Shown here piece by piece: positions 711 to 62,734 of a stretch of DNA of 64,000 nt. Positions within the stretch are counted from its first letter, which is position 1, and each line of letters starts with the position of its first letter. Below the pieces are notes generated by a model, which saw only the letters and a list, made by a program, of their open reading frames with translations, was not told the DNA's origin and searched no databases. The position numbers and the translations under genes are program-made. This stretch comes from Lepidodermella squamata (lineage: Eukaryota; Animalia; Gastrotricha): NCBI GenBank assembly GCA_047495785.1, contig JBLDXI010000024.1:4402001-4466000 (forward strand), given 5' to 3'.

Positions 711-3700
711 ATGTATATCCTATGTGTAATTTTAATACTACTCACCGTTGTAATTCAAGGTTTTTTTGGTAAAAATAAGCCGACTTTGATAAATTTTTTG
801 TTTGCAGGAGCCTGGTGTATTACTTATTGTAATTCTATTGGGGATTGCGAAAATGGGGGAACCTGTTCGAAGGGGCTATGCTATTGCCCCGTGCCGTGGG
901 GAGGCCATCGCTGCGAAAATAATAGTTGGTGACCGCTCTAGTCTCACAAGCAATTTGATAAGTGATAAATATACATCGTACAGACGGGAGATATTGTAAG
1001 GAGTCCGGCACCAACTATCCCGCGTGTAAAAACGGTGGATCCTGCATAAACGATGACCTTGGAGCATCATGCCTTTGCCCTCCTTTATTTACTGGGCGTT
1101 TTTGCGAGTTATGTAAGCTCAGCACGCTTACGCAAGTTGCTCATTATTACTTACTACTCATTATCACAGATAATTGTTCAACACCCTGCCAGAACAATGG
1201 TACTTGCACTGCTCAGTTAACTTGCAACTGCACAGCAGGATGGACTGGGTCAACATGCGCATCAGGTATAAGTGAAAGCTAAAATTATAACTTTTGATTC
1301 TTAACAAATTGAAAAATATTCATAAAAGATTATTCCCTTTAAGTCAGTCTCCAGCAAACTACAAGTGCAAATGTAGTCAGCATTGCAGGACGCTAAAAAA
1401 TCCAAAAACAATTTGCTTGTTCCTCGCACAGTGCGCGAAGTAGTATCCTCGAACTATTATCGGGGTTATTTTCGGGCCCTAATTTGTTGTCCAAAGGGTC
1501 CATTCTGTGGGTTTTTCCGGGGTTTTTTCTACTTTGGTATGCCGAACTGGGGGGGTACGATACCCCTCATTCCCCTTGTACGTCGCGCCCTCGCAGACGT
1601 TTCTCAGTTAGTGTTCGCGCGTTCGACAATTTCATCCAATTCCAGCGGGCGAATTACCTTGATAGCTTTGAGGTGTACACTTGAGTTGGTGGTGGGTATT
1701 GTGCTATTAACAGCTGCTACCGTAAATTGGTGCAAAATGGCCACGGAAAAAATGACCCCCTGGGGTTTTCGCATTTTGACTCGTTTCAGAGGGGCCTGAT
1801 TCCAATCTTAAAGAAAGCTCAATTTACCCCAGTTTGGGAAAAATTGGCAACGCGTACACTTATATTGGGTTTTTATTATAACGCGATTGTGAGGGTTGAA
1901 TGGTCGAGTGGCTTTAACGCGCCATCAGAATGACTATTGATTGAATTGATTGCGATTTCATATAATGGCATTCTGAAAATGATTGAACAGCTGTTTCGTC
2001 GCATTCTGTTCAATGACTGTTTTGATTTCCTAACCTGAACTCGTACTGCCGACTTGAGGTGATTAAGAACTCAGATCAAAATTCATGGCACTTAATCAGC
2101 CGCAATCGTCCGTTGATTTCAGGCGCTAACAAAAAATAGGCTTGCGTCGGGGTGTTTTCCAAATTCAATGTGCCCTTCAATGTGCCCTTTGTGCCTTGTT
2201 AATCAGCCATTTGTTCGAGTCCGTGCCTGAACGGCGGTAATTGCACAGCGCAAAATACATGCACATGTCCAGCTAGTTGGACTGGCTCAACTTGTGCCAC
2301 TCCTATCTGCTCGCCTGTGTGCTCCAACGGCGGAACCTGTAACGCCCAGTTGACGTGCAACTGCACTGCGAGCTGGACTGGCTCTCGATGCACGACTCGT
2401 GAGAAATTTCGAAAATTCAAGTTAAATTTGAGAAAGATTGTTTCATTCTCAGCAAAATGCTCGTCTCCATGCCAGAATGGAGGCACTTGCGTAGCTCCAA
2501 ACACTTGTTCCTGCCCTGCCGGTTGGACTGGTACAACATGTGGCACATTCACGTGCCCAGGAGGCTGCGCCAATGGGGGAACTTGTGCGGGTCCCTCAAC
2601 CTGTACATGCACGGGGCAATGGCAGGGTTCAAACTGCAGTTCTCGTAATCTATTTTCAGAGAGCAATTTATTTGATAACAATTTTGACTAATAACAGCTG
2701 TCTGCTCCTCACCATGCCAGAATGGTGGCACATGTTCGGCGCCTGGCGTTTGTTCGTGTGCGCCTACGTGGATGGGAGCAATTTGTAACACGCAAACGAC
2801 GACTAGTGAGTGATCAGCGACCAAAAATCTGCTGATTAATTTGTTTCTATTGCAGTTTGTACGCAAAATTCAGAGTGCGCGAACGGTGGAACGTGTACGA
2901 GTGGGTTGTGCTACTGTGTTGCTCCATACACGGGACCAGCTTGTTCATTAACAGGTAGGTTATTTTACCGGTGGTAGCGATGTAATTATGCAGTCAGCAC
3001 GAAGGGACGAGCATCTGCTCTACAAACGGCCTCGATTATCCGTGGTGTTCAAACGGAGGGACTTGCATCACCGTAGGCTCGGCGACACAATGCAGCTGTC
3101 CCCCAGGCGTTAGCGGTAGATATTGCGAAACTGGTACGTCTTTTGCATTTTAGTAGATTATTTTTTTAAATCCTCTTTCTCACAGTTTTGCCCCGTAAGT
3201 GACCCGCTTTCTTAGCTCAGGTCAGATGTATTCAACCTTACGACAGGATGCGAAAGTATAGAACTAACCGCAATGCCATGGTGCGGTCTCATTGGCTCGA
3301 CTGGTAACGGATCTAACGCTGTGACACCACTTGGCTGGGCCCCAGTGAACCCCGATAACAGACTATTTTTGACCGTAAACTTACCTTACGAGTTCACCGT
3401 TTCAACAATCGAAGTCGGGAAAGGCACCCTTTTCGCAGGATATGTCAGTTCTTACGCGATTTCCTTTTACGTGAAGCAGGCTCGGCTCGGCAATTTTTAT
3501 TATCCTGTCTTAACCAATCAAAACGACTCGTCGTCGCCATTGAAGGTTTGCGAACAATATTGGTATACAGTCGTAATTTCGCTGTTTGTTTAGTTATTTC
3601 CTGGTTACAACGGTGTCAGCTCTGGCACATCCAGACTATGTCCGAATATCCGTACTTCAGGACTTCGGCTGTGGCCGAAAAATTACACGAGTTTAAATTT

Positions 3701-6700
3701 CGCTATGACTGTGAAAATTTGGATCTGCCTACCCCACACTGGCTGCGTCACGTCGGGCATAGGACTGTGCGCGTCAACTTGCACGTGCCCTGTTGGCTAC
3801 AAGAGCAGCTACGGTTCAAACTGCGGTTAAATTACAATTTTCAAATTCAAATTTGTGAACATGTATACATTTCATCAACTTCAGATATATGGAGTATGCC
3901 ACCAGTCGATTGCGAGGATATTCTGATGCGGGACCGGACATCCCCCGATGGGGTTTACACGATCTATCCCCCTTCATTCCCTTCAATGCAAGTTTATTGC
4001 GACATGACAAGCATGGGAGGCGGCTGGACAGTGTTCCAGAAGCGCATCGATGGCTCGACGGATTTCTACCTGAATTGGGCAAACTACAAAGCAGGCTTTG
4101 GCAATCTCACTGCTAATTTCTGGCTAGGAAACGATAACATTCGCCGGTTGACTGCGCAGAACTACAATAGCATCCTTGCACTTTACATGGTCGCTCCTGA
4201 TGACGACCGCGGCGTCGCTGTGTACAAGGATTTCTATATTGAGGATGAAACTGATAATTACAGGTTCAGATCTAATGGATTTTTGGGTGGAAATGCTGGT
4301 TGGTTTAAAGCACTAAGATCCCTTCATATTCCACCTTACTGATACTCTTTCTACAGGAGATTCTATGACGTACCACTTTGACACCGTCTTCAGTACAGAA
4401 GATCACGATGGTTCGAACCTGGGTAACTGTTCAGTTACATTCAAAGGCGGTTGGTGGTAAGTCGGGACAATAGCCGAGCTATTTGCAGTGATCCCACTAG
4501 GTCTAGCTCTGAGGGGGGTAAATAGAGCCATTTTGAGCCCAAAATTAGCAAATCAACAGGGGGGACCCATACGTTTTTCAGAAATTTTCGAACGCCAGGG
4601 GGGTTTGTTTACCCCCCTTCCCCCCGTACTCGGAGCGCTGGCTATTTGTATCTGACAGTGAAATTTTCTCTTTGTTGACGTTATGACTATGCCAGATTAT
4701 ACCCTAATCACCCTAATCAGGCGTAGTCAAAAAGCGGGGCCAAGGTCTCTAGCCACCACGTAACATTTAATTTGGTATTGGGTTCTCGCAATCGACGCAA
4801 TCGATTCGGGCAGGTTTCAGAGGATTTCACTTTTCTTCCTGTTTTATTTCGCTATAATGTGCCTAATGGCCTAATTAGTCTGATTTGATTCGGCCTTAAC
4901 CAAATCCAAAATCCAAAGGTACTGGTGATTTATTTGTTTCACTGGGTGATTAGTATATACTTCTCAAATGAAGCAAAATTCCAAGCTAACAAAACACTGC
5001 CAAAACCGTTTGCTTTGACTCTACCATAACTGTAATTGCTCGGAAGTTGAATCAAAATTTCAACTTTCCTTCAACTCAACAACCTTGTTTGTCTTTTGGT
5101 GAAGTATTTGCATCCTCAGAAGACATTGACGGCAAAGCGGGAATCTCTTTAGGTTTTAGGCTTTCTTGTTTTTTCCACCTTCTTCTATTGTGTTACTGCA
5201 TAGATATCGTGTATAAGTATTCCAAATGCCTAAAATAGCAATAATCCATTATCTTGTTTTCAGGTACAAGGATTGCCACAGTGCCAACTTTAATGGGTAA
5301 GCGGGGGTTTAGATTTCATAGTTCACTGAGACTGGGGTGTAATTAAACAGGCGTTATGGCGCTACTGCTCGGGCGCAAATGCTGAATTACAACAGCTTCA
5401 AGAGTGACTACGTTGGCATGAAAACGACGAGAATGATGCTCCGAAGGAACAAGCCACAGGATACTTTGCCCTGTTAGTTTATGTTTTTTCCAACTTAACT
5501 GGGTATTAACAATTGATCTTACGGATTTCAGCGCAAGCTTTCCCGAAACCCCTAGATTGCGAGGAGATCCTTGTAGGCAATCCTCACGCCCCGAGCGGTG
5601 TATACCAAATATATCCGATTGGCTCTATTGGTCCAGTCTCTGTTTTCTGTGAAATGGTAGCCCACAGTGGGGGTTTTACAGTGATCCATCGAAACAAAAA
5701 TGATGGTTTAGACTTCAATAAGACATGGGCAGACTACGAAGTTGGGTTCGGGAACCTAAATGGCTCGCACTACATTGGCAACTCGATAATCTACCAACTC
5801 ACAAAAGGGACTGGCCTAAATTATATGCTAGTCATTTTTCTAGAAGACACTACAGGGGACCAGCGATCGGCTGTTTATACTGGATTTTCACTGCTGGACA
5901 CAATTAACTACACGCTGTCGATATCCGCAATGAATGGGGATGATCAGGGTGATTCCATGGCGAGTTCAAATAACCAACCTTTCCAGACCTATGACCAACC
6001 GAAAGGACGCTCTTGTGCTACGATGCGACCAGGAGCGTGGTGGTTTAAAGTGCCAACAAATGCAGACCCAGTCAACCCGGATTGCTCTGATGCTAACATG
6101 AATGGTATTGTTGGGGCCAACTCGTGGGAGAGGGGACTGTTTTGGAGCACCTGGAAGGGCAGGAACACATCCCTTGCCTCAAGCCTTATGATGATACGAT
6201 CTGGTAAATTGTGCAAAAACTCATCGCCATTCTGAACAGCAATTGTGTTTTAGTGAGCTACAAAGCTTCGGACTGCGTGGAAATATATTTCGGCAATTTC
6301 AATACAAGCGATGTATTTTGGCTTTTCCATCCGTCAGTTGGGTCTCTACAGGTTGTTTGTGATCCGCTGAACTACGTGACAGGATGGAAGGGATGGATCG
6401 TGAGTAACTTCAATGACTTTTGGGGTTTTTTGTTATAATTAGGACAACCTGCTTATCTGTTTTCTGACGCTTACACATTTCCTTTACCCAGTTACCGCGC
6501 TATTATTGTCGTGTCACAAAGATAGAATTGTGCTCAAAAATATAGGTCGAGTAGCTTTGCCAATTCGATATTTTACGAATATAAAATTGCAAATAATTCT
6601 AACAAATTTGTCAAGAGAATAACGACAACAGACGACGTTGTAAAAGAATATTGATTTGACTTCAGGCATCAATAACTTTTTTATGGATGAGAGTAATGAC

Positions 6701-9700
6701 CAAATGACTCCACAAAGGCTCTTATTGTCATTATTGTTATTATGACAGTGCGCCATTATAACATATCATTTTCTTAGGTTATCCAGCAACAGTATTTCAA
6801 TACGACATCATTTGCCAGAACCTGGTCGGAATACAAGAATGGATTCACGGCCCCGCCGTTCGCATTGACAAAGGATTTTTGGATCGGTGAGTTTTTGATA
6901 ATTTTTCCAAAATCGAGATCAAATTCTTCGCAGGTAACGAGATACTTTACGAATTGACCAAAGATAGCGCCTATCAGTTAGCTATCAGAATTATTCTGCA
7001 AAACAATACTGAGCTTCGTGCATATTACGGTGATTTCCAAGTCGGCAGCGAGGATGATGGTTACAGGCTATTTGTCAGTAATTACCAAGGCACTGCTGGG
7101 GATATGCTGTCAACCAAGCACAACTACCAGCAATTTTCGACCTCGGATCGAGGCCCTGCATCTGGGTGTTTCGCTCCGTATGGATTCACGGGGGGCTGGT
7201 GGTTCCCGAGTAACTGCGACTTTGATTCGAATTTGAATAACAAAATGTCCTCGAGCGCTGTCAATGCGACTTTGAAATGGGGAAACTTAGCAATAAAATC
7301 CATCAGAATGTTAATTCAACGCAAAAAATATCGTAAGCGTGAAGAGCTCTTAGATTCAAAGTTATACATGACATTTTCACAACAGCTAATCTCAAGAATG
7401 TTGCCAATGCTACAACGATCAATTTAAATTCGGCAGACTACGGCGTGGCAAGGTACGAATGCAACAGAAAGTATTACCCAGTTGGCGGTAGCGAAGAGAG
7501 AGTGCAAATCGTTGGCCCCTGGATATATTCCGGGAATCCACTTTCGTGCAGTCGTAAGTTGATTAGCTTTTCCCACGTTAGCCTTTATTATTTGTATTTG
7601 TCCTGCAGCTCGGCCTTTACCATACGACTGCAGTTCTATCCAGGATTACAACTCAGCACTGGGTTTTACTAGTGAATCGGGCGTATTCACGCTGAATGAG
7701 ACAACAGCCGGAAGCTTTGTCGCGTATTGCGATCAGGATACTATGGGTGGAGGCTGGACAGTAATCCAACGACGAGCAGATGGGAACCAGAGTTTCGCCC
7801 AAGACTTGGCTACTTATGAAACAGGCTTTGGCGATCCATTGGCTAATTATTGGCTTGGAAACGCTAAAATCAGAGCCATGACACAGGCTGGAGACTACGA
7901 ACTGCTGGTGCAGGTCGGAATGACCAACAATTTGGGCTATGCAGTGTATAGCAGCTTCTACCTCTCGGGAGCTAATAGCAGACTTGGTATCGCTGGTTAC
8001 AGCGCAGATTCAAAAATAGGAGATTCCCTCACAGCTCTCCAGGGAAATCCTTTTGTATTGGACACGTGTGGGATGGGTGGCTGGTGGATCAGTTCATCGT
8101 GCAATATAACCACGATTCAGAGCAATTTAAACAATTTGTATGGCTCTCAGGCTCAGGGATACATGAACATCTTCTGGCAGACTTTTACCACACCAGCTAC
8201 GACACCATTAGCTCGCACTGAGATGAAGATACGGCGAATCGTGCCGAGCGGAAAGTACATCAAGGCTCCGAACTACCAATGTAGCAATGGCGGCCAATCC
8301 ACTACTCTGACTAACATCTCCAGTCCCGAGCTTTGCATGGCTAAGTGCACCAACTTTACTACATATGCTTGCGTTATTTTCGTTTACAATCGCAATACTA
8401 AAGCTTGCAGTTTACGAAACCCAATCTGTAAGAATGGTGAAGGAGCTGTCAGCAGTGCGTCAGATACTTACTATCGAAATGAGCTTCTTAGCCATGTCAC
8501 AGCCGACTGCGGTCCTCCTCCTGGGATGATGAATACGCGGATGGAGATTGCCGGAATGCCAACTGTCATGTCTGTAAATTACACTTGCAAATACATTCCA
8601 TACTACAAAAATACACTGACTGCCCAAGATTGGTCTGCACTAACTTGCAATCAGACCACAGGACGCTGGACAGGCAACGCCCTTGACTGCCGAGGGGTAT
8701 GCGGCTTGTTGCCTGATACTACCGGTTCGAATTCACACATCGCCTCTGTTACAAACAATGCTGGTACTTTTACCATCTTATACGAATGCGATGAAAACTT
8801 CGAGTTGGGTTCAGGAGATCTCACCAAACTCTGCGCTTCTCCATATAGCTCTTTAACTGGTGCCGCGCACAATTGCGTCTCCACTCGTTGCAAAGATCCT
8901 CCAATTTTCTCGAACACCACTAATAACTTCACCGCTCCAACAGTAGTGGCTCCAGAACTGCGAAACACGCGAGGCAGTGTATGGGAATATCGATGTGACA
9001 CGCCTGGCTACGTTTTCCGTGACACAGGTCTAACATCCGCAACTTTGACCTGCGCGGTCTCCAAGCAATGGGAAGGAAACGTCGGGATTTGCAAACGTGA
9101 GTTTTTTTAATAAAACTGAGGAACAGAGCATTCGCACGTTTTAGTTTTTCTGACGTTTTGAGAAATTTCATCATTATTTCCCTCTCAGCTGACTGCTCTG
9201 CTATCGGCGGTTGTCAAAACGATGGATATTGCTACTTCCCGAACTCATGCGAGTGTATTGATGGTTGGACTGGTGCGAATTGCTCTATCGGCAAGATTTC
9301 GATCCTAATTGAATCAGAATTATTAAAGCGTATTTCAAACAGCTGATTGTTCGACACTGTCCAACTGCAGTACACATGGATTTTGCGAACAACCTGGCAA
9401 CTGCACGTGCGATGCTGGCTGGTCAGGGCCTGATTGCTCAACCCGTAAGTTCTGCGTATATTCGCTGGAATTCATTTGCTAGCTGAGTTGTGGTATTCAG
9501 CTATCTGCATTGGCGGTTGCAAAAATGGAGCGACATGTATTAGTCCCAACTTGTGCACTTGCACAGTTGGATGGCGCGGTGCAGATTGCAGCACCCGTGA
9601 GAATTGATAGGTTAACATATGTTGGTTGTCTAATTCATACGATTATTTCACAGCTAGCTGCTCGGCTACAACCGGCCTTTGCTCGAATGGCGGCTCATGT

Positions 9701-12700
9701 GTCGCCCCAAATACTTGCAGCTGTGCATCTGGTTGGAAGGATCCCACTTGTGACACATGTAATCATAGACCCCAATTAACAACTTTCTTCTTCCCACCTT
9801 TAATTTACAGTGGATTGTTCAGCTATTGGCAACTGTGCCAATGGCGGCACTTGCACCGGGCCGAACATTTGTACGTGCTCACCGGGCTGGACTGCGTCGA
9901 ACTGCACAACCGGTTAGTTCGGAAAAGGATTAATCAGTAATTTGTAGCGTGGTTATTTTCCAGCAATCTGCTCTGCCGTTTGCTTGAATGGCGGTACTTG
10001 CACTGCTCCCAACCTCTGCACTTGCGCGGCTGGCTGGACCGGTTCGGCATGTAGCAATCGTGAGTTTCCTTATTCTAATAGGCATAATTTCTTCGAATGG
10101 TGATTAAATCCCTAGCTGTTTGCTCACCACCTTGTTCAAACGGTGGATCATGTACTGCACCGAAGACATGCGCGTGCAAACCAGGCTGGATAGGCAGCAC
10201 ATGCGCCCAGGGTAACACCTGAACTCCAATAGCATGTTCACGGATTGATAAAGAATTTTTCAGCTGACTGTACAGCCTTGGGTGGCTGTTTGAATGGTGG
10301 GACCTGTAGTTCTCCTGGGAATTGTACTTGCTCGAAGGGATGGACGGGTGACAACTGCACAACACGTAAGGGCACTGATCGAATCGATAAAATAGATAGA
10401 CATTAAAATCTCTCAGCGGACTGTTCGGCAATTGGTGGCTGTTTAAACAACGGTACTTGCTCAGCACCTGATAACTGTACCTGCGATGCCAGCAAATGGC
10501 GTGGCACGAGATGCGAGAATCCAAATGTTAACTGCTCCAGCTTTGGATCTTGCTACAATGGAGGCACTTGCGTTGGGATAGATGTCTGCAGTTGTGCAAC
10601 TGGATGGAATGGTACAAGCTGCGCATTTCGTAAGTCCTTCGGGTTTTTCTTCAAGCTATTCCGATGGGCCATTCACCATTTAGCATATTGTTCAAGCATT
10701 GGAGAGTGCAAAAACGGCGGAATTTGTGCTCAGCCCAATGTTTGCACCTGCATTGGAGGTTGGACGGGCAGAGATTGTTCGGAGAGGAAGAACGAAACAG
10801 ATCCATCTACTGCCGTTTCGATCTCATTCATAACAGCGATGCCACCTCAAACTTTGATAGCAGCAGCGACTCCTTTCAGTGCTGTCGCAATTGAGGCTTC
10901 AATACGCATCAGCTCCACGGAGAATACAACAGCTCTAGCTGCGTCATCCGCGGCATTCATCGCAGACTTGGGCCCTGTAATGGCAAGATACGCCGAGCTA
11001 GCAAATCAGATGGCCCCGGAAGTTGTCGCCAACATTACAGTTGCTTACGCTACGGCGGCTAGTTCAGTCATGTTTGCTGTATCTGAAGCAGTCAGTAGCA
11101 ACGAAGAAACAACATCGAGCCCGCTATCCCTTGATCTCAACGATAAAAGCATTAAATGTACCACAGAATCGGCCGCGGCCACGACACCAAGCCCTAAAGC
11201 TGCGATGTCAACTGAAGACGTGAGTTTTGTAAGGAGGGATATCAAACCTATGAATTCTCATGTTTTGCTCAGTCATCGAAGCTGTATGGGAATTTCAACC
11301 AAATGATTGATGTCATGTTAAAGATGGTTGAGGCTAATGTTAAAACGGGCAAAAACTTCACATTCAACGGCAAATTTTTCTCAGTGGTTTTGAGTGTTAT
11401 CGATGCTAAGAAGCTACCGAGTTTGAGGCTGGAAACAATCCACGCGGCTGTGGTGTTTCCAAATACGACATCGACAGCGGAGTTTATTGATTCTAAGGCT
11501 TCGCGAGTTTCCATCAAAGACTCTGACATTGTCACCGTTGCAATCACAGCCTACATTGTTAATGTACTCGATCCTAAGCAGACGTTCAACATGCCAACTA
11601 TTTCGGTCAAAGTTCTCTACCAGAAGAAAGAGTTGATTCTAAAGAAAGGCTATCCAACGAAAATTACTGGAAAGCCAGTTGTCTCCAGAGCTGCTATGCT
11701 GAAATTGCAAAAATCTGACGCTCAGTGCGATGTGAGCAAGATTACATGCGACGTCAGCACAAACGCGGATACTATGGGATCATTGGCTCTTTTCCCGGTT
11801 TCTTCGGATTCAGGCGATTTTGTGCTGATATTCCCAGTCATCAAGTACAACTACACGGCTTATCTATCCCTGAATAGCACTCCTACAGTCAAGAGCTATA
11901 CTTGGTCTGTAAATGTTACTCAAACGAATGTCAATATGAGTGTTAATGCCAGCCTCGGAGAACTCAAGTTCAACTACAATACAGATGTCGAATTGAGAAT
12001 ATTGATCCCACAATCAGCATTGCAGGATTTCGTTGATATGCAAGGATTTTCTTCAAATGAAAATGTATCTTTCAAAATGCAGGTTTATACAAAGAAAGAC
12101 TTCTCAAGCCTTTCGACTTTTGAGGACTTGCCAGCCGATGCTTGCGAATTACAACGATGCTACGGTTACCATCTCAAGGTAGGATTCGCCAAGGCGCGGA
12201 ACACCCATTCAAGGAAAAAGCGCGATGCATCTGAAGCGAACGCTGATGATGATTTCGAGCTTGATCCCAGTTCGACTGAATCCGCAGTTACTTTCAAATC
12301 GTCATATTTTGGAGATTTTGGGGCCGATCTGGTGATATCCCCCAACACCATTGAATTCTCTGACATCTTCGCAAATTTCGCCACGCTAGTGTCAGACAAC
12401 GCATTCGTTCTCGCATTCCAAGTTGCCGCTGTTGTGTTCTTCATCGTCGGAGTTATTGTCGTTTGGCGATTTGACAAGCTGGACATCAAGGACTGGGCTT
12501 TCATGCCCTTGAAGAGCAATAAGCCATACGAGACGCACAAATATCTCGTTTCCGTCGATCACTTCGGCGTTAAAAATTATCATCTGAAGCCTGTGGTCCT
12601 ACTTCGAGCTTACGGTGATATCAGTGATACAAACTGGCGGGTCCTTGAAGATTGCGAGAGAGAATCGAATTTCGACGGAAGGAGACCAGCAAATTTCATG

Positions 12701-15700: not shown

Positions 15701-15748
15701 AAGAAACAGGGCGGTGACAGACAATTGAATCCCTACTCTACACATTGA
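711..15748 (+). CDS. Polycystin-1-like receptor/channel subunit, copy 1 (multi-exon; EGF-discoidin-4xFReD-PAN-sushi-EGF ectodomain, PLAT, PKD channel domain); appears intact
   Basis: ATG 711 with signal peptide [17 protein letters not shown]. Many CxNGGxC EGF exons. FReD motifs ([31 protein letters not shown]). PNTIEF-TM1-PLAT (VLLRAYGD...[14 protein letters not shown]) followed by HPWLS..R...S.WTRCERL..., [40 protein letters not shown], which are PKD1/PKD1L hallmarks. About 30 GT-AG introns that keep the frame, plus one GC-AG intron. Stop at 15746-15748. Confidence 0.9.
1720..1935. mobile_element. Truncated, diverged copy of the 33653-34696 family (opposite orientation) in an intron of copy 1
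   Basis: TA|CCGTAAATTGGTGCAAAATGGCCACGGAAAAAATGACCCCC matches the reverse complement of ~34610-34696. Also carries GATTGTGAGGGTTGAATGGTCGAGTGG. Confidence 0.75.
3186..3194 (+). other. 9-nt phase-1 microexon (equivalents at 22749-22757, 48196-48204, 41274-41282)
   Basis: cacag|TTTTGCCCC|gtaagt. Reading through the downstream intron hits TGA. Exon length and flanking splice sites are conserved in all four copies. Confidence 0.8.
4486..4640. mobile_element. hAT-like MITE in intron of copy 1
   Basis: 8-bp TSD GCTATTTG on both sides (4478-85, 4641-48); short imperfect TIR CAGTGATCC / GGAGCGCTG. Confidence 0.75.
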
Positions 15749-41139: not shown

Positions 41140-41514
41140 TTCGTATTCTGCCGCAAGTGGGCGACAATAAATGGCTACTCCGTGTAGTTGTCCGTATGGA
41201 GCTACTGGTCGAAACTGCGAAAATGCGTTATCATCATAGTTGTCATCATTCGCAATCTGCCTTCATTTTGTAGTTACTCCCCGTAAGTGACCTTTCAGCC
41301 TATGCAAATTTTCATTCCTGTGGGAATTATGCGGGACAGGATGTGACAGCGATGAAATTACAGTCAAGTATAGTTTTTGGGGCGGAAACCTTATAAGCTC
41401 TAACGCGACGCTCTAGGAACAAGAGATTGTTATGGGGTCTATTGTTGCTATCCAAAGTCACAAAATCTATCATCCAAGTCGGAAATGGCGCAAATGCTGC
41501 AGGTTATGTGACAG
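41140..41514 (+). pseudogene. Relic fragment of a fourth PKD1-like paralog (EGF exon end, 9-nt microexon, start of discoidin exon)
   Basis: Encodes ...CSCPYGATGRNCEN, then ag|TTACTCCCC|gtaagt (microexon), then ag|GATGTGACAGC (RCDSDEITV) and IQVGNGANAAGYVT (cf. [14 protein letters not shown] in copy 1). Confidence 0.65.
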
Positions 41515-41817
41515 GCACTACACAAAGGGAACCAGACCAGCGGTGACAGCTCTCACGATGCGTTGATCCTAGAAAAGCAGTATGAATATGAATACGTCCT
41601 TGACTTGGATGCGGATGGAAACATTCTCGGCGGTTACGACGATGAGCAATGGGAACGTCTCGACTTCATGTGGGCCGAGGAAGTGCCGGCATCCCATCAC
41701 GTTCAACGCCGACCAGATGGCTGCTCGCCGCAAGTCGTCTGTATTCGGAACTGGTTTCGAACTTTCTGTTTTGTGATCTGTAAATCGGTAATACTTGATG
41801 AATATCAATTTGAGTGA
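41515..41817 (+). pseudogene. Deleted relic of the transglutaminase-CUB gene (3' part and 3'UTR)
   Basis: Strong nucleotide match to 17611-17781, then jumps to ~18133-18257 (~350-bp internal deletion at ~41690). Small indels are present and the 5' half is missing. Confidence 0.9.
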
Positions 41818-51000: not shown

Positions 51001-54000
51001 ACCAAATATATCCCATAGGATCTACTGGTCCAGTTTCTGTTTTCTGTGAAATGGTAGCTCATAGTGGCGGTTTTACGGTGATCCATCGAAACAAAAATGA
51101 TGGCTTTGACTTCAATAAAACATGGGCAGACTACGAAGCTGGGTTCGGAAATCTCAACGGTTCACATTACATCGGGAACTCGATCATCTACCAGCTCACA
51201 AAAGCGGCTGGCCTAAATTATATGCTAGTCATTGTGTTAGAAGACACCACTGGGGACCAGCGATCAGCTGTTTATACTGGATTTTCACTGCTGGAAACGG
51301 TGAACTACACGCTATCCATTTCTGCCATGAATGGGGATGATCAGGGTGATTCCATGGCGAGTTCGAATAACCAACCTTTCCAGACCTACGACCAACCGAA
51401 AGGTCGCTCTTGTGCTACGATGCGACCTGGTGCGTGGTGGTTCAAAGTGCCAACAAACGCAGACCCAGTCAATCCGGATTGCTCTGATGCTAACATGAAT
51501 GGAATCGTCGGCGCCAACTCATGGGAGAGGGGGTTGTTTTGGAGCACCTGGAAGGGCAGAAACACATCCCTTGCCTCAAGCCTTATGATGATACGATCTG
51601 GTAAATTGTGCAAAAACTCATCGCCATTCTGAACAGCAATTGTGTTTTAGTGAGCAGCAGAGAATCGGACTGCGTGGAAATATTTTTCGGCAATGTCAAC
51701 ACAAGCGACGTATTTTGGCTTTTCCATCCGTCAGTTGGGCCTCTACAGGTTATATGTGATACACTGAACTACGTGACAGGATGGAAAGGATGGATCGTGA
51801 GTCCCTTTTTATGACTTCGGGGGTTTTCAACTTAGGCTTCTGACTGGACTGAGCTGTTTGACTGGAAATATTTGACAGCAAATATGTAGAGCTTCTCAAC
51901 CTGGGTTCTCAGGCGTGGGTCGCGATGAGTATCTGATCGTTTACTTGAAACACAGAAATTCCGGAGAAATACCTTTGTTACATGATATTTTTAATGGATC
52001 GCGGCCTGTCGAACAAATTCAAACAAATGTTACGGGAAAAAGAGTGAAAGCCGAATGAAGAAAATTGAGTCTGAAACTTCATTCGCTTAGGTTATCCAGC
52101 AACAATTTTTCAATACGACATCATTTATCAGAACCTGGTCGGAATACAAGAATGGTTTCACTGTTCCACCATTCGCGTTAACTAAGGATTTTTGGATCGG
52201 TTAGCATTTAATAATTATTTCAACAGCGTGATCAAAGACTTTACAGGTAACGAGATTTTGTACAAATTGACCAAGGATAGTGCCTATCAATTGGCCATCA
52301 TATTAATCTTGCAAAACAATACTGAGCTTCGGGCATTTTACGGTGATTTCCAAGTCGGCAGCGAGGAGGATGGTTACAGGCTATTTGTCAGTAATTACCA
52401 AGGCACTGCTGGGGATATGCTGTCAACCAAGCACAACTACCAACCGTTTTCGACTTCGGATCGAGGCCCAGCCTCCGGGTGTTTCCCTTCGTATGGATTA
52501 ACGGGAGGCTGGTGGTTCCCGAGTAATTGCGAATTCGATTCGAACTTGAATAACAAAATGTCCTCGAGCGCTGTAAATGCGACTTTAAAATGGGGAAACT
52601 TGGCTGTAAAATCCGTCAGAATGTTGATTCAACGCAAAAAATGGCGTAAGAGCTTTGAGATGAGACTTGAAACTGTATATGAACTCCCTGAACTAGCTAA
52701 TGTCAAGAATGCTGCCAATGCTACAACGATCAATTTAAATTCGGCTGACTATGGCGTGGTAAGGTACGAATGCAACAGAAAGTATTACCCAGTCGGTAGC
52801 CCAGAGAGAGTGCAAATCGTTGGCCCTTGGATATATTCCGGGAATTCACTTTCGTGCAATCGTAAGTTGATTAGCTCATGACACTTCAGCCTAAAAACTT
52901 CTTCCGCAGCTCGGCCTTTGCCATACGACTGCAGTTCTATCCAGGATTACAACTCAGCAATGGGTTTTACTAGCGAATCGGGCTTATTCACTTTGAATGA
53001 GACAACAGTCGGCAGTTTTGCGGCGTATTGCGATCAGGATACAATGGGCGGTGGCTGGACTGTGATTCAACGGCGCGTAGATGGGAGCCAGAGCTTTGCC
53101 CAAGACTTGGCTACTTATGAAACAGGATTTGGCGATCCGTTAGCGAACTTTTGGCTAGGTAACGCTAAAATCAGAGCCATGACACAGGCTGGAGACTACG
53201 AACTGCTGGTTCAGGTCGGAATGGCAAACACATGGGGCTACTCACTGTATAGTAGCTTCTACCTGTCGGGAGCTAACAGCAGACTTGGTATTGCAGGCTA
53301 CAGCGCTGATTCAAAAATAGGAGACTCGCTCACGCCTCTCCAGGGTAATCCTCTCGTATTGGACGCATGTGGGTTGGGTGGTTGGTGGATAACTTCGCCG
53401 TGCAACTTAACTACGATTCAAAGCAATTTGAACAACCTGTATGGCATTCAGGCTCAAGGATACATGAACGTCTTCTGGCAGACTTTTACCACACCAGTTA
53501 CGACACCATTAGCTCGTACGGAGATGAAGATACGGCGAATCGTGCCGAGTGGGAAATACATCAAGGCCCCCAACTATCAATGCAGCAATGGTGGCCAATC
53601 AACTACCCTAACTAACATCTCAAGCCCGGAACTTTGCATGACTAAATGCACGACCTTCACTACATATACTTGCGTTCTTTTTGTATACAATCGCAACGTC
53701 AAGTCTTGCAGCTTGCGAAGCTCTATCTGCAAGTATGGCGAAGGGGCTGTCAGCAGTGCGTCAGATACTTACTATCGAAATGAGCTTCTGAGCCATGTCA
53801 CAGCCGATTGCGGTCCTCCTCCTGGGATGATGAACGCGCAGATGGAAATTGCTGGAATGCCAACGGTCATGTCTGTGAATTACACGTGTAAATACCTTCC
53901 GTACTACAAAAATACGCTGGCTACTCAAGACTGGTCCTTACTAACTTGCAACCAGACCACAGGACGCTGGACAGGCAATGCCGTTGACTGCCATGGGTTA

Positions 54001-57000
54001 TGCGGCTTGTTGCCAGATACCACCGGGTCGAATTCACACATCGCTTCTGTTACATACAATGCTGGCATTTTCACTATCTTTTACGAATGCGATGAAAACT
54101 TTGCGTTAGATGTTGGTAATCTTACCAAAACTTGCTTTTCGAATGGCTCTTTGGCTGGTGGTGTGCACAGTTGCGTCTCGAGTCGTTGCAAAGATCCTCC
54201 TGTTTTCCCAAACACCACCAATAATTTCACCGTTCCAACAGTAGTCGCGCCAGAGCTGCGAAACACGCGAGGCAGTGTATGGGAGTATCAATGTGACACA
54301 CCTGGATACGTTTTCTATGACACTGGCCAGGCAACTGCAACTTTGACTTGCGCAGTCTCAAAGCAGTGGGAAGGAAACGTCGGGTTTTGCATTCGTAAGT
54401 CTTAAAATTGTTCGAATTTTCAAAACTGATCCTCTCAATAACCTCAGCCGATTGCTCTTCTATCGGCGGCTGTCAAAACGATGGCTATTGCTACCTGCCG
54501 AAAAAGTGCGAATGCATTGACGGCTGGTTGGGTGCAAATTGCTCCATTGGCAAGCTTATAGTTAAATATTCAGAATAAATATCATATTACGCCATTTTCG
54601 TTCATCAGCTAATTGTTCGTCACTGTCTAACTGCCACGGGCATGGATTTTGCGGCCAGCCTGGCAACTGCACGTGTAATGCAGGCTGGTCAGGGTCTGAC
54701 TGCTCGACCCGTAAGTTCATCGTACGTTTCCCGGATAGAACTTCTCCGACTATTGTTTTTCAGCCATCTGCTCTCTCGTTTGCATGAATGGAGGTAACTG
54801 CACTGCGCCTAATGTATGCACCTGCGCAACGGGCTGGACCGGTTCGGCGTGTAGCAATCGTAAGTCTCAACTATCTAATAGATGTTAATAATGATGAGTC
54901 CCCAGCTATTTGCTCGACACCTTGTTCGAACGGAGGATCATGTACTGCGCCGAATACATGCACGTGCAAAACAGGCTGGACGGGCGGTACATGCGCCCAG
55001 CGTAAGACTCGACTATTTTCAGCACATCAGATTTAGATAAATGAAGAGTCTTTTCAGCGGACTGTACATCCTTGGGTGGCTGCTTGAATGGCGGAACTTG
55101 CAGCGCTTTTGGAAATTGCACATGCTCGAAGGGATGGACGGGTGTAAACTGCACGACGCGTAATAGGGCACTGATTAAACCCATGACATTGATTGAGATA
55201 CAATTGTTTTGTATTAGCGGACTGTTCAGCAATTGGCGGCTGTTTAAACAGCGGCACTTGTTCAGCGCCTGGCAACTGTACCTGCACAAGCAAATGGCTT
55301 GGACAAAGATGCGAGATTCAAAATGCTAATTGCTCCAGCCTTGGATCTTGCTACAATGGAGGCACGTGCACTGGGATAGACGTATGCAGTTGTGCTTCCG
55401 GCTGGAATGGAACAAATTGCGCATTGCGTAAGCTTGAAATTTGTCAAATATCGAGCAGAAGAATAATCATTTCTGTAATGTAGCCTCTTGCTCCAACATT
55501 GGGGATTGCAAAAACGGAGGAATTTGTGCTCAGCCCAATGTTTGCACCTGTACGGGAATGTGGACCGGCAAGGACTGTTCGGAGAAGAAAAACGAAACCG
55601 CCATAACTACCGCCGTTTCAATCTCATTCATAACAGCAATGCCACCCCAGACATTAATAGCAGCAGCCACTCCCATCAGTGCTGTAGCTGTAGAGGCTTC
55701 GATTCGTATAAGCGCCACGCAAAACACTACAGCTCTAGCCGTGTCGTCAACAGCATTCATCGCAGACTTGGCCCCTGTAATGGCGAAATACGCTGAACTG
55801 GCGAGTCAGATGGCCCCGGAGGCCGTAGGCAATATTACCGTTGCTTACGCAACAGCTGCAAGTTCCGTCATGTTCGCAGTGTCTGAATCAGTCACTACTA
55901 CCGAGGAAACGACTTCGAGCCCGCTATCTTTAATCCTTACCGAAAAAACCATAAAATGTAGAGCAGATCCAGATGAGGCTACGATACAAAACCAAAAGAC
56001 TGCGTTATCAACTGAAGATGTGAGTTCGGTAAACAGGTGCCTTTATTGCACTGTACTTAATTTGTAGAACCTAATCAGTCGCACATGTCCACATCCCACC
56101 TCGAAACGTGCCAGGGGAAAAATTAAAAAATTCCGCATTTTCCTCATCTTCTGCACTCAAAAGTTTAATAATTTTAATATTTTTGAATAAAATTTAATTT
56201 ATATAATTAAAATTGATTAAAAAATTTTAAAACTATTTTTGATGGCGACGCATTTATTTGGGAAAACTTTTTCATCCGACCAATGTCTTCTTTCATCCGA
56301 AAACAAAACCTGTGACTAAAACATTCTGACATGCTATTTCATATTTTAATAAAAAAATACATTTAAACAGTGACTACTCGGATCGCCATAAATCTTTTTT
56401 TTTAAATATCATGTTTTATTTGGGTTCAACCCCGCGATTATGTAAAACCGTGGAATCTTATAACCGCTAATTGTTTTTAGGTTAGTATTGGTGTTTTGAT
56501 TACTTTGAGTGTATATATTAACTGTCATTATAGTATCAGTTTGTTCTTCAAAAATGTAAAATCGTGAAATATTATTATATGCGAAGAGTATAAAAAAACC
56601 AAGATCAAGTAAGATAGGAATAGTCAATGCATGCGGAAGTACGAACTGAAATGTGTCAGTTTACAGGATATTCGTTTCACCTCATTATTCTTTCCTTTTC
56701 TCTCTGGGAAATGGGATCCCCGGGGACAACTGAGCGCATAGCTAAGGAGGCCCGACAAAACAAGGCTCGCGCTAGCCCACCGGCTGACAACGAGAGCCTC
56801 TACGGGCCATCAGAGCCACGCTCACGCTCCGGGGGGCCATGTCCGAGAGAGAAAATTTCATTTTTTTTTCAATGATTATTCGCAGGTTTTTTTCAGTTGT
56901 AATATGAGGTAGTAGTAAAAATCTTTCATTATAAAATTCTGCCGTTTTAGGGGCCAAAATAGGGTGCATAAAAGGGGTACGCCCTCACTAAAAAATCGAA

Positions 57001-60000
57001 CTCGAGAAAATCGGAAAATAGGTACCTTCCATATCGGATGATTCTAGTCACATTTTTGGTTCTCGGATGAAATAAGACATTGGCCTGATGTAAAAAGTCA
57101 CACCCCATTTATGAGCCCCGCAGGCGCTCGTAAGCCACGGTTTATTAATTCCGGTTCTGGCCTATATTTAGGTGCTGTCTAGTAATTCGTAAAATACGGT
57201 ATACAGTTCTCTCTCGATAACTGCGCGGGGTTCGAGTCCGTGAAATAATCGAGGGAAACAGTTAACGAGGCGTTTTTTGCTTAAAACAGATGGTGCCACG
57301 TGACCTTATTTATTTTAAAGTATACTTTCATCATACGACCAGGGTCGAACCCATACGATCTCTCATCTATCCCAGTGTCAAATATAGATTTAGCCTACTT
57401 TATGAGACTTGGAAATAGGAAATAGGAAACAAATGCTCTTCCTTTTTCAGTCATCCAAGCTATATGGAAATTTCAATCAAATGATTGACGTTATGCTAAA
57501 GATGGTTGAGGCGAATCTGAAAACAGGCAAAAACTTCACATTTAATGGCCAATTCTTCTCTGTGATTCTGAGTGTCATCGACGCCAGAAAGCTCCCAAAT
57601 CTGAAGCTAGAGACCATTCACACAGCTGTCGTCTTCCCTAGCACGTCAATGGCTGCTGAGTTCATTGATTCCAGGGCTTCAGGAGTTGACATTAAAGACT
57701 CTGATACCGTGACCGTTGCAATCACAGCCTACATCGTTAACGTCTTCGACCCTAAACAGCCGTTCAACATGCCAACCATTTCTGTGAAGGTTTTCTACCA
57801 GAAAAAAGAGCTGGTTCTTAAGAAAAACTATCCTACGAGAATAACAGGTAAACCTGTTATTTCTCGAGCAGCATTGCTAGCTTTGCAAAAATCCGACTCT
57901 CAATGCGATGTGAGCAAGATATCATGCGACCTGACTACGAATGCGGATACACTTGGATCATTGGCCCTCTTCGCTGTTTCTTCGGATTCTGGCGATTTTG
58001 TGTTGATATTCCCGGTCATCAAGTACAATTACACGGCTTATCTATCTTTGAATAGCACTCCTACAGTTAGGAGCTATACCTGGTCTGTTAATGTTACTCA
58101 AACCAGTGTCAGCACGAGTGTAAATGCCAGCCTTGGAGAACTCAAGTCAAGTTACAACACAGCAGTTGAATTGAGAATATTGATCCCACAATCAGCGTTG
58201 CAGGATTTTGTTGAAATGCATGGATTGCCATTGATTGAAAATGTGTCTTTCATACTGCATGTTTACACCAAGAAAGATTTCTCAAGCTTTTCGACGATGG
58301 ACGACTTGCCAGCTGATGCTTGTGAATTACAACGATGCTACGGTTACCATCTCAAGGTAGGATTCGCCAAGGCACGAAACACGAACTCAAGGAAAAAGCG
58401 TGATGCGTCACAAACGAGTTCTGGTGACGATTTCGAGCTTGATCCCAGTTCGACTGAATCTGCAGTTACTTTTAAATCATCCTACTTTGGCGATTTCGGA
58501 GCTGATCTATTGATCTCACCCAACACCATCGAATTCTCTGATATCTTCGCCAACTTTGCCACCCTTGTATCAGACAACGCATTTGTTCTCGCTTTTCAAG
58601 TTGCTGCGGTTGTGTTCTTCATCATTGGAGTGATTGTCGTATGGCGATTCGACAAACTCGACATCAAAGAGTGGGCGTTCATGCCCCTGAAGAGCAACAA
58701 GCCTTACGAAACTCACAAGTATCTTGTTTCTGTCGATCACTTTGGCGTTAAAAACTACCATCTGAAGCCTGTGGTTCTACTCCGAGCTTACGGTGATATC
58801 AGTGATACAAACTGGCGAGTCCTTGAAGATTGCGAAAGGGAAACGAATTTTGACGGAAGGAGACCAGCCAATTTCATGATGACTACAACTCTGCCTATTG
58901 GCCATATCGAAGCAATCGAAATTCGAATTCACAGTCGATTCAGGGCGCCACATGGAAGCAAGCCTCTTCAGATGCAGATCGATAAAGTTGTGATGGTGGA
59001 TATTGAGAAGGGACAGAAGTTTGTTTTCTTGACCAAGGCTCCAATGAAAAGTGGAGAGATGAAGTTCAAAGAACTCGCGACTGAGGATGAGATCAAAGGC
59101 TTCAAGTACTTGGTCAGCGCTCATTCTCGAGTTGGCTTATTCAGTTCTCACCCTTGGCTATCGATCGGGAGGCGTCCTCTTCCAAGTAGCTGGACCAGAT
59201 GCGAACGCCTGGCGTGTGTGGTTAGTGCCCTCTTCATGGCCATGCTGGTAAACGCAATGTTCTACGGGAAAGAGAGCAAATCACCCCGAGTCGGCGTCAA
59301 CATTGGAGGATTCTTCCGCCTGTCCTGGTTTACAGTTTACACGAGCTTCATCGGATGCGTCATCGTCATCCCTCCAACTGCGATTATGGCCTTCATTTTC
59401 AAGCGAATTCGACGTCGATCGGCTGAGAATAGCCAATACACAACTATTTTCAACGTGGCATTGGGATTAAAGCGACGAGATGCCGATAGCAAAGAAAAGA
59501 AGCCATTTCAGCTTCCTTACTATTGTGCCATCATTGCATGGATTTGTAAGTTTATCAGCTTATGCCTGTTCATTCTTGAATTTAGTTAATTCTAGTGGTC
59601 GCTGGCTGTGTTGGAGTCTCTTCCTTCTTCATCGTCATGTACAGCCTGATGTGGGGCAAGGAGAAATCGCTGCAGTGGCTCAGTGGAATGGTCATGAGTG
59701 TTGTTCAAGACATCATTCTCATCCAAACAGTCAAAGTCGCATTGCTGTCCGTCTGCAGTTCAACTTTGTTGTCTCTGCCTGATGACGGTCTCGACATTGG
59801 CAAGATGACATTCTCTAAGAACAGCTCCAACAAGAAATCGGAGCTCTTCAAGCGGATGCGGAACATCTTCGGCGGAATTTTCCACCACATCATCTACGTC
59901 GTTGCATTTGCTATTGTCGTCTCAGCTACGCAGAACAGACTTGCTTATCAACAAATTGGGGACTTGAAGCCGCTTGTCGTGATGCCTACTGTACCTCAGA

Positions 60001-62734
60001 TGGCCGTGATCAATGATTACAGCCAAATTTATTCGTGGCTGAACAACAACCTTTTGCCGCAGTTTTTCACTGCCAACCAGTTGAGCAAGGGCTTGAAATT
60101 CAACGTGAAAAACGTCTACCAAGTTCTAAATCACGATGTGGTAGTTCTCGGGCCTATTCGCTTGAGACAACAAAGAGTGCGCTCAGGCAAGTTAGCTTAA
60201 ACAGTTCTCCCTTAAGCAGTTGAACAGTTAAAAACTTAAAAACCAAAATGGCTTGCTGCTGGCCCTGAAACGCATCCCAAACAAATTGAGAAGCCCAAGT
60301 TTAATAACTGTAGCCCTTGGATATTTCTAGCTCCACTAGCTCTATTTCTTGATTATCATTATAACATTGAAGAAACTAATTCGCTAAATCTGTGGCCTTT
60401 TTGACTAATCTACTGTTTGCCCTCAAGAGATCACCCCAAAACAAGTGATAATAAATTTAAAGTTTAAAGGCACCAGGACATTACACGATAACAGCTGTAC
60501 GGTTATTAACGAGCTTTCCAACAAAATCATTGTTGAGATTTTACTATAGTTGTAGCTATAATAGTGGCCGAAGGCGCCCAATTTAATATCCCACTCCACA
60601 CAAAAATATTGCAGCATTTAAACAATACAATATAAACACAAACAAATTTGGTTTTACACCAATAAGGGTCTTGAGGACAACACTCAACGTAACCGAATGA
60701 TTCACATGATTACCTCATTTCAGCCCCATGTTTGTTGGAGACTTCGGCGATTCCTCAGTATGTCAAGAAATTCACAGATCTGCTCGTTGTCAACACTACA
60801 AAGTGTCAAAATCAATACGTTGGCCAGCTTGGAGTTGGAGTGGACACTGAGGCCAGACAGTTTTCCAATTTCAATTGGACTTACAACTTAAATACTACTG
60901 CTTGGGTACCAGAGAACGTCACAACTGATCAGGCGCCATGGATCCATCGAGAAGATAGTGGGATCCCCTACTCAGGCTGGCAAGCTACCTACACTAGCGG
61001 TGGGTATTACGTTGATCTACCTGTGAATCTTGCGAAAGCTCAAGCATTCGTTTCTGGGCTTCAGTCGAGAAGATGGCTTGACAATGCAACTTCAGTCCTT
61101 TTCGTCGACATGGTTCTGTTCAATGCACAGGTCAACTTGTTCATTGCGGTGAAAGTAATTTTTGAAGCCCTGAGTGCTGGAGGCATGACTTATCATGCGA
61201 GGATGTATCCTCTTCAGCTCTACCAATACATCGGAGCCAGTTCGATCTTCGTTTTCGCCATTCAAGGAATTTGGATTTTGCTTGTTTTCTCGCATCTGGT
61301 CAAGATTTTCATCAAAATGAAGAAGGAAGGATTCACAAAGTTCCGAAAAGATGGATGGAACTTGTTGGAGCTGTGCCAGATATTGATAGCCTTGGCCATC
61401 GTTGGATTTTTCATAGCTCGAATTGTCGTAGTTATGAAAGCTGTTACGAGACTTCAAACCGATCGAACTTCTTTTGTGAATTTCGATCTTCTGGTCAACT
61501 GGGAAGCATTGATGGCCAATCTGTACGGCATCACCTTTTTCATGACGATGCTGCTGTTTTTCCGCCACCTCACCTTCAACAAGTACTGGTGCATGTTCTT
61601 AGGCACCCTTTCTAAGGGCAAAAATGACGTTCTCTCATTTCTGTTTGTTTTCACGCTGATCACGATTCTCTTCGCACAACTTGGCTACCTGAGCATGAAC
61701 ACAACTCGCGACGAGTTCCAGAGTTTCAGTGAATCGATTCTGACCCTTATTCAGAATATTATTGGCGTAAGCGGCTCTCTGATGTCGCTCAGCTTCACAT
61801 CGCGATTCATCATGTTATTTTGCATGGCTTACTCAACTATCGTCATGTTTTTGGCTGTTCAGGTCTTCATGACAATTATATCGGTTACCTATGGCCAAGT
61901 TGCCGATAACGTTGTGGAAAACACCGACTGGGACCACGAACTATCGAGTTACATGGCAGAGGAGTTATCATCCGCTGTTACTAAAGCGATCGCGAAGCAA
62001 GAAATAGCTCCGCCAGTTTTCGAACCTGTTGGAGAACGCAACCTTGCAAAACGTAAGCCCTCATCGAACTAATATAGCGCTTTTTATTCCATGTTACAAT
62101 AGTCGAACTTTCAATCCACCGCTTTTCACGATTCATTGAGACGCAAATTGCGGACGAAACCTATGAAAGAGTAACGAAACGCGAGCGTTGTTTGATGCAC
62201 TGGATGGACCTGAAGTTGCATGCTTCACGACTGCGGAGAGTGATGAACCCTCCTGCTCAGCGTCAGGTTCCTGCAACCATCGACAGCTCAACGAAGATCA
62301 AAGACCCTAAGCTGTTCCTACATGGCGACAAAATTGTAACGCAACGAGGTCATTTCGTTAAGAACATCGAACCACTTCCCGAGCCGATTCTTCTAGACTG
62401 GTCCCGCCAGATGCAAGTTAGCAATGCCAACCCACCAGTTTTGCCGAAGCAGATATTCATGCCTCAAATCGCCAAACCGGCTGTGCCTGACATCATGTTC
62501 AAGGAAAAGTATGTCACGAAAGAAAGCCCAGTAGCAAAGCCACCAGCTCCGAATCTATCACAAAAAGGACCGCAAAAAGGACCGCATGTCAGTCCGGGTC
62601 AGAAATCGCTGTGGGGTATGCTCTTCCCTAATAAGAAGCAGCCTGACAGTTTGCCAGTCGGGTCAGTTCGAGGAATGTACGACCCTAAGAAACAGGGTGG
62701 TCGCAGTCAGTTAAATGCATATCCAACACATTGA
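45044..62734 (+). CDS. Polycystin-1-like paralog, copy 3; apparently intact, three EGF exons fewer than copies 1/2
   Basis: ATG 45044 ([17 protein letters not shown]). Exons collinear with copy 1. Long ORFs 52918-54405, 57409-59589, 59595-60200 and 60732-62072; stop at 62732-62734; AATAAA ~62813. Confidence 0.88.
46066..46849. mobile_element. Mutator-like (MULE) internal-deletion element, nested within an older inverted-repeat element (~45753-46950)
   Basis: 9-bp TSD CGAGAGTTT (46057-65, 46850-58). ~120-bp TIRs with TCACTTGCGCAT subrepeats. Minus-strand remnant [40 protein letters not shown] resembles the C-termini of animal MULE transposases. Confidence 0.78.
50093..50180. repeat. Hairpin/inverted repeat in expanded intron of copy 3
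   Basis: AAATTTTTCTGCAATTTTTGGCACCT...AGGTGCCAAAAATTGCAGAAAAATTT. Confidence 0.7.
56260..57107. mobile_element. Inverted-repeat element(s) expanding the post-stalk intron of copy 3 (intron ~56020-57450)
   Basis: TCATCCGACCAATGTCTTCTTTCATCCGAAAACAAAA.. is inversely matched by ..TTTTGGTTCTCGGATGAAATAAGACATTGGCCTGATG. The same intron is ~50 nt in copies 1 and 2. Confidence 0.6.

Follow-up and report, generated by a model that had tools for sequence, protein, structure and literature searches.

A tandem array of polycystin-1-like genes with four-fibrinogen-domain heads in the gastrotrich Lepidodermella squamata

Exchange of ectodomains (heads) is common among members of the polycystin-1 (PKD1) family (PMC1934368). 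The solved complexes 6a70 and 7d7e contain one PKD1-type and three PKD2-type chains by chain count, and an N-terminal fragment of PC1 including the C-type lectin domain activates PC1/PC2 (PMC7728438). In planarians, mechanosensation depends on pkd1L-2, which is expressed together with pkd2 genes and whose product is a protein of mechanosensory neurons, while chemosensation depends on pkd1L-1 (PMC11448475). Platynereis PKD1-1/PKD2-1 act in ciliated mechanosensors (PMC6294549). The sea urchin proteins SpREJ1-3 belong to the PKD1 family as well; their lectin heads are under positive selection and they have been linked to the acrosome reaction (PMC1934368). Here we describe three tandem PKD1-type genes in a stretch of 64,000 nucleotides from the gastrotrich Lepidodermella squamata (GenBank assembly GCA_047495785.1, contig JBLDXI010000024.1, positions 4,402,001 to 4,466,000; hereafter the window, to which all coordinates refer). 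Their head combines four fibrinogen-related domains (FReDs) with discoidin, PAN, Sushi and EGF modules and offers a well-understood chemistry, that of the ficolin-type acetyl pocket. With a probability of about one half, we propose by analogy with described polycystins that the two intact copies encode ciliary sensory subunits with 11 transmembrane (TM) segments, which would act with a PKD2 partner in contact-sensing of glycans. The PKD1-family core and the habit of head swapping were known already, and the four-FReD head is an unusual head of that kind. New are the broken state of the second copy, the link to a branch around PKD1L-2 with a dead G-protein-coupled receptor proteolysis site (GPS), the finding that just one lectin pocket is intact and that this pocket is also the most variable, and a marine cassette gene without a channel.

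Comparison of the window with itself revealed three collinear copies on the same strand, with a unit of approximately 15–17 kb and blocks of 77–90% nucleotide identity. Paralog A (711–15748, + strand) was modelled with 35 exons and a single open frame of 3,721 amino acids. Paralog C (45044–62734, +) is open as well, with 32 exons and 3,724 amino acids; compared with A it has three EGF exons fewer and a longer tail. Paralog B (20761–37302, +) shares the 35-exon layout of A and is broken twice. The splice models were built by local scripts, with a few junctions picked by agreement among the paralogs. Introns end in GT-AG or GC-AG (one GC-AG in A) and have a median length of 53 nucleotides, and their positions and phases are kept across A, B and C. 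Amplification or assembly duplication as the source of the array was rejected, as the copies are just approximately 80–87% identical, with synonymous divergence (dS) of 0.3–0.9. According to these models, A and C are intact genes and B is one broken gene.

The encoded proteins have the order signal peptide, 10 EGF, discoidin, four FReDs, PAN, Sushi, 8–11 EGF, GAIN, PLAT and 11 TM segments with the PKD channel. Database searches were run exon by exon, joined models being excluded. Pfam matched Fibrinogen_C four times per copy (E 1e-14 to 1e-39), and EGF, PAN_1, Sushi, Polycystin_dom and PKD_channel were matched in each copy. EGF modules number 10 + 1 + 11 in A and B and 10 + 1 + 8 in C, as judged from exon and Cys counts. 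An initial annotation made from the letters of the window had set the ends of the array at 711 and 62734, which is exact, and had counted four fibrinogen domains per copy and about 20 EGF modules in two arrays, in agreement with these results. It had also read the array as three paralogs joining a PLAT and PKD-channel module to a head of FReD, discoidin, PAN, CCP and EGF modules. This layout was recovered in all three, whereas B, with its frameshift and an inserted element, is not an intact channel gene.

In paralog A (all parts on the + strand), exon 1 encodes a hydrophobic, signal-peptide-like N-terminus (711–759), which is followed by the N-terminal array of 10 EGF-like modules in exons 2–9 (808–3133) and by a discoidin (F5/8 type C)-like domain with one EGF-like module in exons 10–11 (3247–3825). 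FReD1, carrying a Ca2+ D-x-D motif and an x-C-H acetyl (S1) pocket, is encoded by exons 12–15 (3885–5472), FReD2 by exon 16 (5532–6203; 95–96% identity among paralogs) and FReD3 by exons 17–19 (6254–7332), the latter two without canonical ligand motifs. Exon 20 (7386–7553) holds a small two-Cys linker module that is Sushi-like by eye only and had no Pfam match. Exon 21 (7609–9096) encodes FReD4, which has a short P subdomain, together with PAN and approximately three Sushi repeats by Cys pattern. The membrane-proximal array of 11 EGF-like modules occupies exons 22–31 (9189–10790), and the 3′ part of exon 31 (10791–11219) continues in frame from the last EGF into an Ala/Ser/Thr-rich stalk. This stalk is possibly the helical part of GAIN; an ESM Atlas search with it gave no usable match.

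The membrane part of A begins with the 5′ portion of exon 32 (11273–12330), a GAIN-fold domain with a beta-rich insert. The 3′ portion of the exon (12410–13370) encodes TM1, a cytosolic PLAT domain and TM2-TM3. Exons 33–34 (13421–15395) add TM4-TM5 and then S1, the TOP domain and S2-S6 of the PKD channel, and exon 35 (15444–15748) encodes the cytosolic tail, the most divergent region among the paralogs. Hydropathy analysis gave 11 TM peaks and one peak in the TOP region, in addition to the N-terminal signal peptide. The last six TM segments form a TRPP-like channel with TOP domain according to the Polycystin_dom, PKD_channel and PDB matches, and this 11-TM arrangement is a trait of the PKD1 family.

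Pfam scans of the exons showed no match to PLAT, GPS or discoidin. However, exon 10 scored 0.95 against F5/8 type C clusters in the ESM Atlas and shared 32% identity with a discoidin-rich relative; a PDB sequence search did not recover the discoidin domain. For A exon 32, an alignment-based structure model reached a predicted local distance difference test score (pLDDT) of 83, compared with 32 for a single-sequence AlphaFold model. Residues 1–356 of the model, before TM1, match the GAIN domains of CD97 (Z 12.7), CELSR1 (10.8), GPR126 (10.5) and BAI3 (10.2), with a weak Foldseek match to the BAI3 GAIN domain (E 1e-4). The GAIN domain had not been part of the initial domain list. Residues 406–499, after TM1, match the PLAT folds of lipoxygenases and lipases (Z 5.4–7.0, lipoxygenase 7.0), and the exon aligns with TM1-PLAT-TM3 of human PC1 (E 7e-11). 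As modelled and aligned, the PLAT and discoidin domains named in the initial annotation are real and too diverged for Pfam. Within the GAIN region, a beta-sandwich insert at approximately 11720–12170 (model residues 150–300) had weak pilin and SIDT-like matches (Z approximately 6) and does not resemble the GAIN domains of adhesion G-protein-coupled receptors.

REJ domains and PKD repeats, likewise not recognised by eye in the initial annotation, were not matched in the Pfam exon scans, although control relatives do score REJ. Moreover, the distance from the last EGF to the modelled GAIN domain is just about 144 amino acids, which is too short for REJ. With 11 TM segments, GAIN, PLAT and channel, the predicted proteins belong to the PKD1 family, but not to the REJ subfamily.

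The autoproteolytic GPS motif H-L-T/S is usual, albeit not universal, in the PKD1 family. In A, B and C it is replaced by S-Y-F-G-D-F (12302–12319, +, in A). A furin-type motif, RKKR in A and C and RKRR in B, is present instead; in A it lies at 12212–12223 (+), in a low-confidence loop of the GAIN model, and it is kept in four environmental relatives. In the motif table, R-x-K/R-R is confined to the genes of the window and to their relatives from metagenomes. The loss of GPS cleavage is therefore, as read from these motifs, the older event and common to the branch, and the furin motif came later, as a trait specific to the subclade.

The channel retains its pore helix, with I-I-G-V as filter. 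A homomeric PKD2/TRPP channel would have 6 TM segments and an acidic L-G-D filter; here 11 TM segments were found, and since the acidic Asp of PKD2 is absent from the filter, a homomeric channel is unlikely. This filter, together with the ratio in the solved complexes, suggests a 1:3 heteromer with PKD2.

We considered whether each unit might instead comprise two genes, one for a secreted lectin and, downstream of it, one for a short PKD1-like protein, separated by polyadenylation or trans-splicing. A head-only gene does exist in a marine relative (contig L008, see below), and in A an in-frame stop and an AATAAA signal lie within intron 21. However, 8 of 87 short introns contain AATAAA, and intron 21 of B and of C does not; with the signal confined to A at this position, an intronic poly(A) switch conserved among the copies was rejected. 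The introns at the Sushi-EGF-stalk-GAIN junctions are approximately 50 nucleotides long, canonical and phase-conserved in all three copies. The stalk and the EGF module preceding it are encoded by a single exon, and the models contain one signal peptide only, at the N-terminus. Furthermore, two other relatives (L003 and L004) likewise run ectodomain modules directly into GAIN. The read run covering the stretch is genomic DNA, whose contigs run straight across the introns, with no splice joints. Because of the canonical junction introns, the shared exon and the single signal peptide, head and channel very probably lie in one gene, joined as the open splice models predict, and split units are very unlikely.

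The channel sequences closest to those of the window are metagenome contigs with 43–46% identity, and in the channel tree these and the three paralogs make up one group (100/100). It is nested in a 100/99 set of 13 rows that also holds Schmidtea PKD1L-2, two Lingula proteins and one Owenia protein. A dead GPS is common to the planarian, the Lingula and one Owenia row, H-L-T being replaced by a strand containing Phe or Tyr. By these comparisons the window genes sit in a REJ-less, GPS-dead invertebrate branch with planarian PKD1L-2. Planarian PKD1L-2 (AKN21725.1) and the Lingula and Owenia proteins share with them the 11-TM PLAT core, the lack of a Pfam REJ match and the replaced GPS, F-K-S-x-F/Y-x-G-x-F. 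In contrast, their heads consist of TSP1 repeats, C-type lectin, CUB+FN3 or PAN without FReD, they lack the furin motif of the GAIN loop, and identity over TM1-PLAT-TM3 is just 28%. The human proteins PC1, PKD1L2 and PKD1L3, which form 1:3 heteromers with PKD2 or PKD2L1, have the same order of GAIN, TM1, PLAT, 11 TM, TOP and channel as well as lectin-type ectodomain modules, and REJ is also absent from PKD1L3 (PMC1934368). Unlike these, the window genes are without LRR, WSC, C-type lectin, PKD repeat, REJ and the H-L-T motif, and their head is built of FReD, discoidin, PAN and Sushi on EGF arrays.

A further comparison is with the SpREJ proteins of the sea urchin, likewise an invertebrate PKD1 family that has expanded and whose heads vary and in part are lectins (PMC1934368). 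This family raises the possibility that the gastrotrich genes are receptors for gametes or conspecifics. SpREJ proteins are defined by the REJ domain, however, and carry C-type lectin/SUEL heads under positive selection, encoded by 10 dissimilar genes instead of near-identical tandem copies. The window proteins have no REJ domain, PKDREJ-named rows fall elsewhere in the tree, and positive selection was not found (see below). In addition, L. squamata reproduces mostly by parthenogenesis. A role in gamete recognition is thus most improbable.

A FReD profile that readily detects the window exons matched none of 169 polycystin relatives. This sample, in which 48 proteins exceed 1,500 amino acids in length, is limited and no architecture census. 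Heads in the wider family contain TSP1, C-type lectin, CUB+FN3, PAN, F5/8C, Frizzled or WSC. Literature searched for fibrinogen or gastrotrich together with polycystin, covering few subscription papers, held no description of such proteins, and a scan of JGI metagenomes found no relative. Within this scope, the initial impression of an unfamiliar multi-FReD polycystin architecture is borne out, and tree and array support the lineage-specific, tandemly expanded set of PKD1-family subunits postulated with it.

A gene on a marine metagenome contig (L008:1-6400) encodes the head cassette alone, with a C-type lectin, three discoidins, EGF, FReDs, PAN and Sushi. Its modules are 32–44% identical to the matching window exons, and it ends without a channel before an unrelated gene on the opposite strand. 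The protein is apparently secreted, and the head cassette itself, as far as sequence can tell, is old. Contig L004 contains a long EGF array, a gap of Ns and then a GAIN-PLAT exon with 47% identity, and L003:1-1395 encodes EGF, a LamG-like region, a Thr-rich stretch and Sushi. Together with L001:691-1647, the latter belongs to the same polycystin subclade and has another head (Sushi, LamG/pentraxin-like by eye, Thr-rich stalk); these predicted heads show head exchange inside the subclade. An ABI gene on L003 had its best matches in molluscs, at 44% identity over part of the protein, too little to place these relatives taxonomically. The summed depth of contigs from the genomic read run over 12475–13270, the PLAT-TM3 part of A, is 10–20 times the single-copy level. 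This is consistent with many further paralogs, depth not being a copy number.

In FIBCD1, ficolins and tachylectin-5A, acetyl groups are bound by an x-Cys-His pocket and the Ca2+ site to which it is linked (Asp393 and Asp395 in FIBCD1; PMC3908420). As in these lectins, FReD1 of A, B and C retains both Ca2+ aspartates, the aromatic residue before the GGWW motif and Cys-His, and its exon 13 scored best with ficolin-2. FReD2–4 are without the Ca2+ and Cys-His ligand motifs, so that only FReD1 keeps the ficolin calcium/acetyl-sugar pocket. The lectins named are oligomers of single-FReD chains and contain no channel, whereas the window chain holds four different FReDs in tandem, three without ligand motifs. 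In the P subdomain of FReD1, 20 of 55 columns (36%) are variable, against 97 of 752 (13%) for all remaining FReD regions (Fisher p 2e-5); among the three paralogs the values are 2% for FReD2-P and 24% for FReD4-P. This strongest difference among the paralogs at the FReD1 pocket suggests tuning to different ligands. On the other hand, the ratio of nonsynonymous to synonymous substitution (dN/dS) is well below 1 in all domains, indicating purifying selection; no well-sized domain exceeds approximately 0.3, and two short modules have higher point values with wide intervals. Positive selection was not found in the domain dN/dS of the three paralogs. Judged from these sequences, the FReD1-P pattern fits ligand tuning or relaxed loops, and an arms race is unsupported.

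These data bear on two other interpretations of the head. First, the proteins might be pure mechanosensors whose heads are protein-binding tethers to the animal's own cuticle or matrix, with force on the EGF arm gating a PKD2 partner and the FReDs serving as adhesion modules of the angiopoietin/tenascin type. Such a tether would agree with the lack of lectin motifs in three of the four FReDs, with the near-invariance of FReD2, whose best scores are to angiopoietin-2, tenascin-R and MFAP4, and with the mechanosensory role of the nearest named relative, planarian PKD1L-2. It leaves unexplained the paralog expansion, the variable FReD1 pocket and the channel-less L008 cassette with its C-type lectin and three discoidins, and we regard it as unlikely. 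Second, the proteins could be immune receptor-channels of epithelia or gut that sense pathogens and respond with Ca2+ signals for defence, while secreted heads serve as opsonins or decoys. Such a function would be in line with the ficolin-like FReD1 and its variable pocket, with the channel-less cassette protein of L008 and with tandem expansion, gene conversion and pseudogenization, which are typical of immune clusters. Yet every domain is under purifying selection, just one lectin pocket is intact, and the polycystin literature cited reports sensory, gamete or renal roles and not immune ones, which makes an immune function quite unlikely. The ligand- or microbe-sensing function suggested in the initial annotation therefore stands in part: the ficolin-like FReD1 pocket varying among paralogs speaks for it, while three of four FReDs without motifs, dN/dS well below 1, the mechanosensory PKD1L-2 and one broken gene speak against it.

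For glycan contact-sensing by A and C, which we consider the best interpretation, the following course can be imagined. Each protein would contribute the one PKD1-type chain to a 1:3 channel with PKD2/TRPP, located in ciliated sensory cells; this siting is probable from the family, because planarian and Platynereis PKD1-like proteins sit there. The lectin-like cassette of discoidin, EGF, four FReDs, PAN and Sushi would have been acquired on a long EGF arm, which may keep the head away from the membrane. To judge from its motifs, FReD1 would bind acetylated sugars in a Ca2+-dependent manner, with FReD2–4 as scaffold or protein-binding modules, and furin, instead of self-cleavage, might cut the GAIN loop. 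Channel opening could then change when the head touches or pulls on something coated with glycans, for example food bacteria, biofilm or the substrate. On the model of PC1/PC2, a GAIN domain cut by furin would relay the binding or pull to the channel. Several observations weigh against this proposal. The position of FIBCD1 Tyr431 is occupied in FReD1 by Arg in A and Trp in B and C, dN/dS of FReD1-P is 0.2–0.3 (from three sequences), and loops vary more anyway, as does FReD4-P. The channel tree was midpoint-rooted, so that its root is arbitrary, and its branches are long. Finally, no PKD2 gene is present within the 64-kb window. A bolder version is unlikely: the genes would belong to a large family of pattern-recognition receptors that are ionotropic and still diversifying, in which a paralog-tuned ficolin-like pocket would gate the channel on microbial surfaces, furin would replace GPS self-cleavage and release or loosen the head, and channel-less cassettes would be soluble partners or decoys. 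As the pocket differs among paralogs on a core with a furin motif in place of self-cleavage, the coupling of ligand to gating is testable by head swaps. If true, contact-sensing by A and C would illustrate how polycystins were turned into a repertoire for contact chemosensation in a phylum that has received little study.

Paralog B is disrupted at two sites. A 7-nucleotide insertion in exon 31, near 31113–31119 (feature 31110–31125, +), causes a frameshift with a stop at amino acid 2205, so that the frame ends upstream of GAIN and the membrane part. In exon 33, the TM4/5 exon, a non-coding element of 1,044 nucleotides (33653–34696, no strand assigned) resembles a miniature inverted-repeat transposable element (MITE), with terminal inverted repeats and a TA duplication. 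The damage appears recent, since the exons past the frameshift keep dN/dS values of 0.05–0.10 and are free of internal stops. Paralog B is thus probably a recent pseudogene, or at most the source of a secreted head. The lesions, read from the assembly sequence alone, could represent one allele of the sequenced individual. A tract of 200 nucleotides in A (11037–11236) is 98.5% identical to B (approximately 31230–31430) and approximately 74% to C; it adjoins the B frameshift, and its sequence points to a likely recent gene conversion.

Additional MITE-like inverted-repeat elements, all non-coding, are located at 1718–1930, 40125–41114 and 45754–46951. The element disrupting B has a relative in the first of these, which lies within intron 4 of A. 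A non-coding block with 82% conservation lies downstream of both B (39108–39316) and C (63529–63725).

Between B and C (41140–41817, +), a decayed piece resembling the EGF exon 9 is followed by two fragments of the transglutaminase gene that lies between A and B. The sequence of this relic suggests that this gene was once inside the duplicated unit. The gene between A and B is intronless and encodes a secreted-type protein of 479 amino acids (16778–18217, +) with a TGase_elicitor match (E 8.5e-33) and a weak CUB match. Its GC content at third codon positions is 0.69 compared with 0.50 in gene A, and a horizontal acquisition of this gene is possible. The GC content of the window as a whole is 43.9%.

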